Origin: Parasitella parasitica NRRL 2501
Taxonomy: Eukaryota > Fungi > Mucoromycota
Direction of reading: 5' to 3'
Assembly (NCBI GenBank): GCA_025201805.1
Contig: MU619246.1
Location: 175,627 to 239,626, forward strand
DNA length: 64,000 bases
A program made the position numbers and the translations under genes. Shown here piece after piece: positions 2,043 through 7,560 of this stretch. The notes beneath the pieces are model-generated. The model was not told the origin of the DNA and searched no databases. It saw nothing but the letters and a program-made list of their open reading frames with translations. Each line of letters starts with the position of its first letter. The stretch's first letter is position 1.

Positions 2043-2145
2043 CAGTTGAACTGATTAATTTTGTCAGTTCAAAAAAAATAAATGTCGTTAGTAAAAAAAT
2101 GAATGTCGTTTGGCAAAAAACAAATGTCACTAACCTAAAAAAAAA
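2043..2145. repeat. Tc1/mariner-type terminus (TA|CAGTT...) with 21-bp-period subterminal repeats, directly downstream of Fanzor
   Basis: TA at 2041-2042 followed by CAGTTGAACTG. A TGTC core recurs at exact 21-bp spacing, four copies. About 70/100 gapless identity to the terminus at 2874-2973. Confidence 0.7.
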
Positions 2146-2195
2146 ATATCTGTTACCTGCATAAAATAATCAGGGCGTTAATCTTGGTGGAAAGT
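2135..2195 (-). ncRNA. Candidate Fanzor omegaRNA (scaffold and start of guide)
   Basis: Minus strand TTTCCACCAAGATTAACGCCCTGATTATTTTATGCAGGTAA overlaps the Fanzor stop and precedes the element end, where omegaRNAs are known to lie. ACC/GGT pairing is possible. The resemblance to a Mucorales Fanzor1 scaffold is from memory and unverified. Confidence 0.5.
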
Positions 2196-2875
2196 TCCTG
2201 TTTTGTTGTCTTAAGAAAATTGTCAGTCGTCTGCCTGTCTTCCTCAAGGAGATTAAAATCCTTCTGAAGTTTAATACAGCTGCAAGATCTCGATTCCATA
2301 GTCGGTTTTCATTGCTTGAACACATACTGCTTCGACATCTTAAAGAAGGTTAGTCTTCATAATCCAATGTTACGTGAGCATATGTATTTTTATTATTTAC
2401 CTTGTTAGGCCATGACACTTTACAGTGGGCATTTTGTGTCGTTGATATGACCTAGGGTTTCGGATTGTTTTAAACTTTTGATCGAGCTTGCCACCACAGC
2501 CTGAGCAGAGGGAAGATATTTTGTAAACTTTAAAACCGTTCTTTTGCAGCATCTTGATCAACCCAGCGTTTCTAATTGGTTCATGGTATTTGGCGTTTGG
2601 TGCAGACCAATTTCCAATTATCAGAACTGAATTCGATCCAAACTTCGTTTTCAACTTGTTTACCAACTGCGCATCATTTTTGTTGTAGTATAATTTGCTT
2701 GAAAACTTGAATTTTCTGAATGGCAATAACTGCAAATTTTGTAAAACATCATGTACACATTGTTTCAAGTCGTTTCGATAATTTGTCAGCATTTCCAACG
2801 CAAGATTGACAATTTCGGTGTTAGCGGCATCGATTAAACGTTCTGATATATGTGGTTGCTGAAGCATTTTATGTA

Positions 2876-4373
2876 CAGTGCGGCCGGGAAATATTGTCCG
2901 TTTTACAAAAATAAATGGCGATTACAAAAAAATATTTGTCGTTTACCAGAAAATAAATGGCGCTAACTAGAAAATGATCGGCCGTTTCTCAATTTTTATT
3001 GGCCATTTCTCAGATTTACTATGGCCGTTTTACGAATTCACTTTGTCGGTTTACTAGACTGTTCTGTTCGCTATGTTGTAGAAGCATGGACGTAAGCCAA
3101 CTAACTCTTAGAATTCTGTTTTATTCAGGCAATTGATGATTTGGCGCTTCGAGTGTCTACAAAATCCACGGAGATCACTTACGCGTACATCGTTGCACGC
3201 ATCAGCAATTCTTTGTGATAAGTTCTCTTCGCTTAGCAGCCTATGGCGCTTCATCTTTCCTTTTACAATGGCCCAAAACTGCTCAATTGGGTTCAGTTCT
3301 GGAGAATAAGGAGGTAGATACATCACTCGATATCCTCTGCTCTCAATCTTTCTCATCATTGGATGCGACTTATGAATAGTACAATTATCCATAACAAGGT
3401 AACTGCCCTTCAGATTTGCATCCATGTCCATAATATCGAGAAGCTCATTCATGAATTTCACAAAGTGAGCTGTGGTTGTACCTTTGGAAGGCGGCTTGGT
3501 TTCTTCTTTCTCAACTTCCACATACTCTATGGTGGGCTCCTCAATGACAATCCCTCCTGTCTGCTCTTTGCCCCTCGCAAGCTTTCTTTTCTTTGACTTC
3601 TCTGCTTGAATTGTTTGAGGCTTCTGTCCTCTTGGCTTTCTTGGTGGAGGCTTTTTCATGACAACGTGAAGAACACTAGAAGAATGAATGGCGCCAATGA
3701 TAGTATGTGAGGGGGAGCGAGTCTTTGCAATATCAACAATGGCAGGTGTTCCTACTGCTGATCTAGCCCAATTGCTCCTCATGTTGATATTGAATCCAGC
3801 CTCATCAATGAAGACGCAGTTTGTGCCGTAATCAAGATCAGAATCCTTCCAATTCATGAACCATTCATATCGTTTTTGCAAGTTTTCGGGAGAGTTTCTC
3901 GCCTTGGGGTCGAAGGTTGGCTTCTTGATGGATATGAGCATATTGTTCCTCAGATGATCATTCATTTGAGACTTCGAGATTTTGAAGTCTTCAAACTTGG
4001 ATGTCAACATATCAATGATATCGTCAGCACAAAGCTGCGAGTCTTTTTCAATAACATCCTGGATATACTTCTCATGTTCTCCAGTAAAGGAACTGGGTCT
4101 GCCTGCGTTTTTTTCAGATTTCTTGTAGGCTACCTCACCCGTCTCGTTATAGTGCTTCCACCAACGCATAGCGGTACGAGGGTTTATACCCAGCTCTTTC
4201 GCTGCTGCTGTTACCCTTCCTCTTTCCACAGGGCCTTCAAGCATTCTTTCAATAAATGTTTCTCTTGTGAGATCATTGTGCTGCTTGTAAGCGCGGTCCG
4301 AGACATATTTAGCAACTTTGAAAGGCTTTACAGAAACATCTTTCATAATGACTTCTTTGTCTTGTGGTTTAAG
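2876..4373 (-). mobile_element. Tc1/mariner-IS630 superfamily DNA transposon nested in the Fanzor gene; the other end lies in the gap
   Basis: TA at 2874-2875, then CAGTGCGGCCGGG and 21-bp-period repeats. Fanzor coding sequence resumes right after the TA (xHKMLQQPHISERL) and continues beyond the gap at 4979. Confidence 0.85.
3108..4373 (-). CDS. DD34E Tc1/IS630-family transposase, 5' end in the gap
   Basis: Open frame with HTH (AAAKELGINPRTAMRW), FIDEAGF, VMDNCTIH and YLPPYSPELNPIE; 34 residues lie between the second D and the E. Confidence 0.93.
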   Translation of the reverse strand, partial: LKPQDKEVIMKDVSVKPFKVAKYVSDRAYKQHNDLTRETFIERMLEGPVERGRVTAAAKELGINPRTAMRWWKHYNETGEVAYKKSEKNAGRPSSFTGEHEKYIQDVIEKDSQLCADDIIDMLTSKFEDFKISKSQMNDHLRNNMLISIKKPTFDPKARNSPENLQKRYEWFMNWKDSDLDYGTNCVFIDEAGFNINMRSNWARSAVGTPAIVDIAKTRSPSHTIIGAIHSSSVLHVVMKKPPPRKPRGQKPQTIQAEKSKKRKLARGKEQTGGIVIEEPTIEYVEVEKEETKPPSKGTTTAHFVKFMNELLDIMDMDANLKGSYLVMDNCTIHKSHPMMRKIESRGYRVMYLPPYSPELNPIEQFWAIVKGKMKRHRLLSEENLSQRIADACNDVRVSDLRGFCRHSKRQIINCLNKTEF

Positions 4374-6919
4374 NNNNNNNNNNNNNNNNNNNNNNNNNNN
4401 NNNNNNNNNNNNNNNNNNNNNNNNNNNNNNNNNNNNNNNNNNNNNNNNNNNNNNNNNNNNNNNNNNNNNNNNNNNNNNNNNNNNNNNNNNNNNNNNNNNN
4501 NNNNNNNNNNNNNNNNNNNNNNNNNNNNNNNNNNNNNNNNNNNNNNNNNNNNNNNNNNNNNNNNNNNNNNNNNNNNNNNNNNNNNNNNNNNNNNNNNNNN
4601 NNNNNNNNNNNNNNNNNNNNNNNNNNNNNNNNNNNNNNNNNNNNNNNNNNNNNNNNNNNNNNNNNNNNNNNNNNNNNNNNNNNNNNNNNNNNNNNNNNNN
4701 NNNNNNNNNNNNNNNNNNNNNNNNNNNNNNNNNNNNNNNNNNNNNNNNNNNNNNNNNNNNNNNNNNNNNNNNNNNNNNNNNNNNNNNNNNNNNNNNNNNN
4801 NNNNNNNNNNNNNNNNNNNNNNNNNNNNNNNNNNNNNNNNNNNNNNNNNNNNNNNNNNNNNNNNNNNNNNNNNNNNNNNNNNNNNNNNNNNNNNNNNNNN
4901 NNNNNNNNNNNNNNNNNNNNNNNNNNNNNNNNNNNNNNNNNNNNNNNNNNNNNNNNNNNNNNNNNNNNNNNNNNNNNNGATAATAAGGTGTTGACAGAGG
5001 CTCTTGTTTTAATGTATTCCACATAGTTGTCTACGTTTACAGAAGAAGATTTGGTTTCCGATAGCGTGGCTTCTGCAGCTTTGATAACTTTTGGCTTGGT
5101 TTTCTTTAGCAACATTTTGAAGTGTCTTGATAATTTACTTTGAGTTGCGTTAGAATACACTAGGGTTTGTTTGTCGCTCGTTTTGCTTGTTTCTTTCATG
5201 CAGTATAGCAAGTCTCTTCTTCCTGGATCCATGAGCACACATTTTCCATTAGTTCCCTTCAATTCTTCTTTTGCTAAATTTTCGATATATCTCGTTTCAT
5301 CATCGGCTACATTCTTATCACTCTTGACTGGCGGCCCTTTTCGGGAGGTATCGCAGTTCTGTTTAATGATACTGGCACCAACTCCATCAATTTCAAGAGT
5401 ACCTTTGAAGCTTAAGTATCCTTAGTCTTTAAAAGCCTTGGTTTTAAGATTGACTATAGATCCCCAGTTCTCGAGTTGACTTCTTGGCATCAAAGGTTTC
5501 TTGCTTTGAATAATATGGTAGTGGATAATCTTGTTGTCTAACGTCATGTAGCAAGGAATGAATGTCGTTCTTAATGGGAAACAGAAAAATTGCTTTAGCT
5601 GCACCGCTTCAAACAATTCAGCAAGTTTAACGATGGCTTTGAAGTGGTTTTCTGGATTAGCCTTTATATCGTAGAAGATTGAGTCCATTTTAAACATGTA
5701 ATTTTCTGGATATGCCGACAAGAAAGTTTGTACTTTTGGTTTTGATGATTCATTCAAAATATCAACGTTGGGTATGCCTTTTTTAGCTGCAGCTTGTATA
5801 ACTTGGTCACAGGGATTGTAAGCCTTTTGTCGTATCGCTTCTTTAATAGCTTCTTCACTAAACGCATTGGACGCCATTTCTTTACGGATAGTATCCGCTC
5901 TTTCTTTTTTTTTCACAGAGCTTATTTAGTAGAGTTCGCAATCTATTTCCAAAATGGGTCTTTATGTTGTTAAGATAGGCAGTTTGGATCTTGGTGCACT
6001 CATGTAGGGCTATTTGTTGAGCATTCACCAGTTTGATTGGAGTATAATTCGCGTCTTCCAAGTAAGATTGTTGATATTTTGCTATGAACTTCCTGTACTC
6101 CGCAGTCGTGTCTTTAAGCTTAACAGACCTGCGGGTAGTATTTTGGATCAGAGACAAGAACACTTCCACAAAGAATTCTTTTCGTGGCCAGTTCTTTCAA
6201 GAACATGTATTCTGAAAAAGCAAATGTGTGAGTGATGACTGTATGAGTAGTATTCACTAGATTATACAATCTGCAAACATTCTGGTTTCCATATATTTTT
6301 GATAGTTGTTTTCACTGTCATCACCTTTTTTCTTGTTTTATCATCAAAGCTTTTCGTTGTAGAACCAGGTTTGGTAGCAGTAGAGTCAGACTTGGAAGTA
6401 GTAACATTGGGTATATTCATGAAACTATCTGGTTGTGTAGTCTTGCTTGGTTCACCTATCATTGGACCTTGAGCATTGGTGTTACGAAAGCCGATCTTGC
6501 TTGTGCTACCAATTTCGTCTTTGGCAGAATTGTCGCTTTGTTTACCTATGTAATGGGTGTTTAAAATGCTTTGATTCTTCAACACTTATGAATATAATGT
6601 ACTAATACATACTTCTTTTTCTAAAGGTTACTGATGGCTGAAAATCATCGTCTGAATTGTCGGTTATAGTTTTTTCATATGTGTCTACCATCTTAGCTTA
6701 AATTAGTAACGTTTTGGTCAGAAATTAACATGTATCTTCATCGTTTCTGTTCTTAAAAGACTCCTCTTCAGAGCAAGAAGTAAAAGTATCCTTCCGACTT
6801 TTCGTCATCTGTACTTTTCTGAAGGGAATAGTTATTTATATATGGTGTCTTCAGAAAACTAGTTTAAAAAAGAAACAAATGTGTAGAAAAAAAAACAAGA
6901 CACAAAATATTTATGGAGA

Positions 6920-7560
6920 ATGCATTGTAGGTTCTAATAACGACAATATGTGCCATTTGTTATTTCAAAATAGACAGAAATTACAGGTTGCACTGTTACA
7001 GAATTGTTCCATAACGTTTATCACTAATGCCTTGATCTTGTAAATGAACTGCCATGGCCTTCAGTTAAGTTCAGCAGGATAAAAAATGACATCGTGGTTA
7101 TGATCCTTGAGATATTTGTAGCAGGCTTGTAATCAAGAATCAATATTAGTTGTGTTGTCCTCGACATTTTTGTTTCAACTTACTGTATCAAGCGCCCCAT
7201 AGAACATTTGTTTAAAAGCATTATCAACCAGCAGCATGCTGAATAATTGTAGCTTGACATCTTAGTCGACCATTTGTACTTGCAATTGTGGCTATACAGG
7301 TATTTTCAATTAATTTTATAAAAATGAAATAAGACGACAATGCAACTTACCTTCTATCCTTTATAGTTGGTACAGGTTGGAGCAATAAAAAGTGAAATTT
7401 TTTCAAAACTCACTGAGAGTTGATTTTCCTCTTGCAAACTATAAAGTACTTATTACAAACTCTTCTCCATGCCTTTCCTTAAACCTAGTCTGACTTACCA
7501 AATACCTTTCGTTTGGCATAGCACTGTGTTTGCTATCGTACCAGGAATAATAAGCTTGCA
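6920..7560 (-). pseudogene. Degraded TE-associated gene remnant upstream of Fanzor, possibly PD-(D/E)XK family
   Basis: Broken frames read ACYKYLKDHNHDVIFYPAEL/LKAMAVHLQDQGISDKRY. Intron-like signals are present but there is no long ORF. Confidence 0.3.

Follow-up and report, generated by a model that had tools for sequence, protein, structure and literature searches.

The question raised by a 64,000-nucleotide stretch of the Parasitella parasitica NRRL 2501 genome (contig MU619246.1, positions 175,627 to 239,626; here called the window) is whether a series of short minus-strand open reading frames (ORFs) near its beginning are the scattered remains of one gene for Fanzor1, a eukaryotic TnpB-like, omegaRNA-guided RuvC nuclease. 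DNA cleavage by Fanzor1, dependent on a target-adjacent motif (TAM), has been shown for PpFz1 and SpuFz1 (PMC11423790, PMC10432273). An earlier reading of this DNA, referred to below as the original prediction, had joined five such ORFs and an unlisted last exon into a decayed Fanzor gene lying next to a Tc1/mariner-type end. Judged from its sequence, the interval 6995-2043 (minus strand) very probably represents a dead copy of a DNA transposon of the Tc1/mariner type that is non-autonomous and has a passenger Fanzor1 gene, which belongs to the PpFz1 subgroup carrying the FRI insertion domain. As a pseudogene the locus is unremarkable, a relic from a known family and of a kind already described (Bao and Jurka 2013; Saito 2023; Xu 2024).

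To address the identity of the gene, each piece of the window was searched separately, exon by exon, against the sequences of solved structures (Table 1); entry 9cf0 is a fusion of maltose-binding protein (MBP) with PpFz1 and its residues are given in fusion numbering. Significant similarity to a validated Fanzor1 protein was obtained for five of the six pieces (E 7.7e-8 to 5.3e-50), while the sixth matched weakly (E 0.046), and all six are collinear with 9cf0, in agreement with the Fanzor identity proposed earlier. Fanzor1 of Spizellomyces (8gkh) was the second match for three of the pieces. The 440-aa ORF of sister copy C201 matched PpFz1 across its whole length (E 1.7e-140) and SpuFz1 with E 4.4e-28. 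Because these are direct sequence matches to two experimentally characterised Fanzor1 proteins of solved structure (PpFz1, 9cf0; SpuFz1, 8gkh), the locus can be assigned to Fanzor1. The protein family is large, with 1128 cluster representatives at E-values up to 0.001.

The five listed ORFs (6262-6585, 5882-6169, 5422-5916, 4979-5262 and 2397-2867) are all present at these coordinates, and the last exon (2338-2170), which no ORF list contained, reads as claimed. Two parts of the gene had been overlooked. Exon 1, starting with the ATG at 6691 (minus strand), ends in DDDFQPSVTFRKR, which resembles DDDFQPPIIRRKR of the PpFz1 N-terminus, where the motif SDDDFQP..RKRS is shared. A third-frame piece (6275-6172; YNLVNTTHTVITHTFAFSEYMFLKELAT) closes the hole between the first two ORFs. 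Two GT..AG introns are predicted, one of them confirmed by an intronless relative: the protein P0004 (contig L046) is continuous across the predicted junction of intron 2, which supports the proposal that this putative intron splits the zinc finger, here between its third and fourth cysteine. That the pieces and the last exon form one protein holds in so far as they derive from one ancestral gene; a single reading frame is no longer present, as lesions and a nested transposon with an assembly gap lie between the pieces.

The motifs on which the original prediction was based, namely DGVG, DPGRRDL, IGNWS..HEP, CxxC...C(x5)C and NRDLAAVLN, were all found. The RuvC-I aspartate is kept in DPGRRD (codon 5229-5227), aligned with DPGRRD of PpFz1 and DPNKRD of SpuFz1, and the RuvC-III RD is kept in WNRDLAAVLNF, compared to WNRDQAAVLNF of PpFz1. 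Also kept is the C4 zinc ribbon following [TS][TS] (SSLCSGC ... CHGLTR|C, the fourth cysteine being encoded by the last exon), which fits the motif given by Bao and Jurka (PMC3627910). The strand IGNWS..HEP is conserved upstream of RuvC-II and is not a catalytic site; the catalytic glutamate resides in GEYKTSS of the sisters, corresponding to DEFRTSS of PpFz1 and to DEYKTSS of SpuFz1, which includes E541. In the window this glutamate is missing (VYKISSLC, compared to VYLLGEYKTSSLC in the sisters and IDEFRTSSFC in PpFz1). As the glutamate before [TS][TS]xxC is present in sisters C201 and C57, the family qualifies as Fanzor1 and the window copy is inactive.

Lesions were called from an alignment of the window copy with four sisters (five copies in total) together with tblastn frames, and the resulting list confirmed the decay that had been proposed. 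The window copy is dead: its reading frame is shifted at least four times and interrupted by one in-frame TAA, the RuvC-II glutamate is lost, and the guide-RNA region shows lesions.

Table 1. Coordinates of the Fanzor1 locus in the window, matches of its pieces to 9cf0, and lesions
Feature	Position	Strand	Remarks
Fanzor1-carrying Tc1/mariner-type element	6995-2043	minus	ends aligned with sisters C57, C101, C201 and C62
Left inverted end	6952-6995	minus	CAGTGCAACCTG...
Exon 1	6691-6613	minus	MVDTYEKTITDNSDDDFQPSVTFRKR + 1 nt; absent from the original prediction
Intron 1 (predicted)	6612-6546	minus	GTATGT...AG, 67 nt, phase 1; frame presumably runs on into ORF 6262-6585
Exon 2, 5' part (REC/WED + RuvC-I)	6545-4979	minus	frames 6545-6265, 6275-6172, 6181-5885, 5916-5425, 5421-4979
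Assembly gap	4374-4978		605 N; expected: about 193 bp of Fanzor (about 64 codons), TA, first 376 bp of nested element
Nested Tc1/mariner element, visible part	2876-4373	minus	1498 bp = nt 377-1874 of 1874; TA 2875-2874
Exon 2, 3' part	2873-2401	minus	covers the FRI end, the RuvC-II region and zinc-finger Cys1 to Cys3 (2507-2505, 2498-2496, 2417-2415)
Intron 2 (predicted)	2400-2339	minus	GTAAAT...AG, 62 nt, phase 2; splits the zinc finger between Cys3 and Cys4
Last exon	2338-2170	minus	Cys4 2337-2335; RuvC-III Asp codon (NRD) 2289-2287; stop 2172-2170
Homologue of PpFz1 omegaRNA 5' part	2193-2156	minus	stem-loop 1 (SL1) 2188-2169; AATGCAGG-type box 2163-2156
Right subterminal repeats and inverted end	2043-2155	minus	
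Piece 6265-6585	6265-6585	minus	N-terminal; 9cf0 residues 490-531; E 0.046, weak
Piece 5885-6169	5885-6169	minus	9cf0 residues 579-668; E 1.4e-30
Piece 5425-5916	5425-5916	minus	9cf0 residues 664-825; E 5.3e-50
Piece 4979-5421	4979-5421	minus	9cf0 residues 833-976; E 1.7e-43
Piece 2400-2867	2400-2867	minus	9cf0 residues 1046-1206; E 1.9e-39
Piece 2173-2337	2173-2337	minus	9cf0 residues 1213-1259, C-terminus of the chain; E 7.7e-8
Lesion: 99-nt subterminal deletion, left end	after 6969		non-coding; placed by alignment with sisters
Lesion: 2-nt deletion	after 6271		frameshift
Lesion: 32-nt deletion	after 6185		frameshift
Lesion: 1-nt insertion	5913		frameshift
Lesion: in-frame TAA	5424-5422		
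Lesion: nested transposon insertion	within exon 2		
Lesion: 15-nt deletion	after 2526		takes out the RuvC-II Glu
Lesion: 1-nt deletion	after 2202		shifts the C-terminal tail
Lesion: 39-nt deletion	after 2156		non-coding; directly past the guide-RNA scaffold

The two halves of the gene lie on either side of 605 unread bases, and the sequences bordering this gap are not continuous with each other: from 4979 upward they belong to Fanzor, from 4373 downward to a second transposon, beginning with its nucleotide 377. The transposase ORF of this nested element ends at 3108, and the 1263 bp at 3111-4373 encode DDE_3 (E 3.5e-24) and helix-turn-helix (HTH) domains. A complete copy (C34) comprises 1874 bp and contains an intact ORF of 473 aa, and its 176-bp inverted ends are perfect; TA flanks the element in this and other sampled copies, three in all. 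The DNA at 2874-4373 has at least five matches in the genome over the whole 1500 nt with 99.5% identity or more, and the nested element is young and probably still active in this fungus. Copies of it were seen on C34, C65, C35 and C16 (L029, L031, L032 and L045).

In sisters C201 and C101, both sides of the interruption fall within one open frame (452 and 479 aa), and the two halves in the window consequently belong to one gene, as the original prediction had assumed for the pieces on both sides of the gap. The halves are thus parted by the nested Tc1/mariner element and not by the gap alone. The assembly broke at this position because the 176-bp inverted ends of the nested element are perfect. 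The codons expected in the gap include the YPQP loop of the FRI domain, the counterpart of P614/P616 of PpFz1. A scaffolding mis-join of two unrelated partial Fanzor copies, with halves that never formed one gene at this locus, would be conceivable in view of the unread gap, which hides the left junction of the nested element, and of the approximately 15 family copies and fragments that could confuse scaffolding. This explanation is very improbable, as both halves have the same orientation, are collinear with a 3193-bp sister and about equally diverged from it (92-97%), the perfect inverted ends provide a plain cause for the break, and the expected missing content of about 571 bp (376 + 2 + 193) fits the estimate of 605 N. 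The locus, read as one Fanzor1 gene interrupted by a younger element, cleanly illustrates how the insertion of a nested transposon can account for an assembly gap.

Several points weigh against this interpretation of the locus. The left junction of the nested element falls within the unread gap, and where the window has TA next to the element's right end, sister C201 has TG. A 1-nt difference after 6533 may be a lesion of the window copy or of the sisters. Splicing of the window copy is predicted from its sequence. Finally, Pfam searches with all Fanzor pieces of the window and with the sister ORFs gave no match above threshold, the best being Cas12f1-like_TNB with E 0.14; since neither window pieces nor sister ORFs were recognised, Pfam is blind to this Fanzor family.

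The public gene model P0018 (160 aa), which reproduces the pieces 5425-5916 and 4979-5421 of the window and skips the stop, implies that splicing past the lesions still gives a protein that works at least in part. This can practically be dismissed, since the model stops inside the RuvC-I region without a nuclease core, the RuvC-II glutamate is deleted, a 1.9 kb foreign element splits the RuvC/FRI region and the copy has several frameshifts. P0018 (window 4979-5916) is a mis-annotation in which two pseudogene pieces were joined by invented introns past an in-frame stop, and the locus is useful as an annotation correction because a public gene model rests on pseudogene pieces. All sequencing runs that were found behaved like DNA, including run X7, which had been guessed to contain RNA; the joints of X7 represent deletion variants of family copies that also occur in DNA runs. 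It showed no intron-sized joint at either predicted intron, which does not indicate that the locus is silent.

In intact relatives, Fanzor1 has been shown to bind a short RNA encoded at and just past the 3' end of its own ORF and to cut DNA beside a short motif, the TAM. By analogy with TnpB, the cutting of sites from which the element has been lost would aid its persistence. The window copy is incapable of such cutting: its ORF is broken, the RuvC-II glutamate is gone, two pairs of the guide-RNA stem are lost, and the FRI/RuvC region has been invaded by a Tc1/mariner element of 1874 bp that was active recently and whose left part would lie in the assembly gap together with about 64 Fanzor codons. 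RNA-guided, TAM-dependent cleavage is therefore not expected of this copy.

The carrier was delimited by comparison with its sisters. The full-length sister C57 measures 3193 bp and runs from CAGTGCAACCTG... to ...CAACTG; the window copy is enlarged by the nested element and the gap. The terminus expected near the gene end was found as CAACTG|TA at 2043/2042-2041, 127 bp past the stop at 2170. The left end is located at 6995, approximately 190 bp further left than the extent of 2043-6808 given originally. On the right, TA flanks the element at 2042-2041; on the left, one extra A (6996) stands between the TA at 6998-6997 and the element. The inverted ends CAGTG...CAACTG with TA flanks occur in about ten copies, and the sisters are bordered by TA on either side; of seven sampled copies that keep the right terminus, six have TA after it. 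Furthermore, the carrier ends are homologous to those of the nested DDE_3 element (71% identity over 102 nt), which bears out the proposed Tc1/mariner-type nature of the carrier. It has no transposase of its own, and Fanzor1 genes in Mariner-type elements with TA duplications and without their own transposase were described by Bao and Jurka (PMC3627910).

The published omegaRNA of PpFz1 is 71 nt long with a 7-bp SL1 stem (PMC11423790). Its 5' part, with the 7-bp SL1 and the AATGCAGG box, has a homologue in this family, and a comparison by eye with a sister sequence showed agreement at 31 of the first 39 nt of the omegaRNA. Both the sisters and two other species preserve the SL1 stem, some of the changes in it being compensatory, and in the window two of its seven pairs are broken by G-to-A changes. 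In this family the scaffold is located 110-190 nt inside the element rather than adjoining its end as in PpFz1. Four other lineages and half of the copies in this assembly have a scaffold that ends in CAG|GT, which resembles a 5' splice site; a branch-like CTGAC with an AG (2052-2051 in the window) precedes the right terminus by 8 nt in the window and by 8-11 nt across cases. Candidate signals of such a right-end intron were seen in the window (2157/2156 and 2052-2043), in L028 (5692-5843) and in L033 (6812-6995), and the window copy retains both of them. One can speculate, with considerable doubt, that this candidate intron would excise the right end of the element and put the scaffold beside flanking DNA, so that the guide RNA would be assembled by the spliceosome and a functional homing system would use the left-flank TATA as its natural TAM. 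The 39-nt deletion of the window copy would then fall inside this intron. An initial interpretation of the deletion as loss of the 3' half of the omegaRNA would hold only for an unspliced native RNA like the PpFz1 RNA expressed in yeast.

A compact element from another sample (L046; Logan contig SRR10989974_44487, 2886 bp) is an intronless Fanzor1 element whose inverted ends measure 30 bp and whose open ORF encodes 732 aa. With only 40 nt between the scaffold box and its right end, it needs no splicing there and has the canonical guide-RNA layout.

TATA directly precedes CAGTG in 10 of 11 left ends with a readable register, which represent independent insertions; the left flanks read were those of L026, L028, L034-L037 and L040-L043 and window 6996-7000. 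No constraint is seen on the two bases past the TA at the right, and the nested element, which is related, lacks the TATA bias. This one-sided TATA fits a TAM-like constraint; alternatively, the extra TA belongs to the element. The TAM of PpFz1 is 5'-ATN-3' (PMC11423790), and the left-flank TATA fits it.

PpFz1 (PDB 9cf0-9cf3; Xu et al. 2024, PMC11423790) has the same domain order, from the N-terminal DDDFQP..RKRS to the C-terminal NRD..AAVLNF, and shares with this family the FRI insertion of about 100 aa in RuvC, including its cyclophilin-contacting P-x-P (P614/P616), kept as YPQP in the sisters. Aligned similarity is only moderate, which makes this a different family, and the window copy is a pseudogene. 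The exact 27-mer of the PpFz1 omegaRNA was absent from the assembly at up to two mismatches, and no locus closer to PpFz1 than this family turned up in it. SpuFz1 (PDB 8gkh; Saito et al. 2023, PMC10432273) is homologous in its WED, RuvC-I, RuvC-II (DEYKTSS) and zinc-ribbon regions, but it lacks an FRI domain, its omegaRNA is longer (about 90 nt), and its identity is much lower. Mucorales Fanzor1 genes in Mariner-type carriers (PMC3627910) are likewise the sole gene of multi-copy families with Tc1/mariner-like ends and TA duplication; the catalogued families include MCi-1 to MCi-10 (PMC3627910). Bacterial TnpB of IS200/IS605 (e.g. ISDra2), likened by description, has the RuvC D-E-D triad and zinc ribbon, a guide RNA from the 3' end of the gene and a TAM on the left flank, as here, whereas the window gene is eukaryotic, intron-bearing and much larger and is carried by a cut-and-paste DDE transposon instead of a TnpA element. 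As a single locus, the window copy is of little weight: it adds one more dead Fanzor1 copy to families catalogued since 2013 in the same group of fungi, and its nearest relative already has a solved structure. What is conserved across copies, namely the FRI/cyclophilin-binding loop, the SL1 stem and the one-sided TATA, bears on how these nucleases work in their native host.

The assembly holds about 15 copies or fragments of this Fanzor family with 83-98% identity, and about 25 loci resembling Fanzor1. Only C57 is full length, yet frameshifted, and the other loci are deleted, truncated or contain stops. A search with an intact foreign Fanzor1 gave 39 matches on about 25 contigs, none of which covers the query without stops or truncation; the intact siblings suspected elsewhere in the genome were thus not found in this assembly. 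Four copies at different loci (C161, C76, C50 and C105; L035, L036, L037 and L039) share an 813-nt internal deletion (reference nt 1806-2618), which takes RuvC-I and the FRI domain and thereby much of the nuclease core, and two copies share a 311-nt deletion. As shared deletions occur at different loci, Fanzor-defective forms must have multiplied after losing part of the gene. On C16 (L027 3592-5163) we observed a Fanzor1 ORF of 523 aa that is divergent (40-54% identity) and in which the TDGVG strand and almost all of the FRI region are missing, representing either a FRI-less subfamily or another deleted copy.

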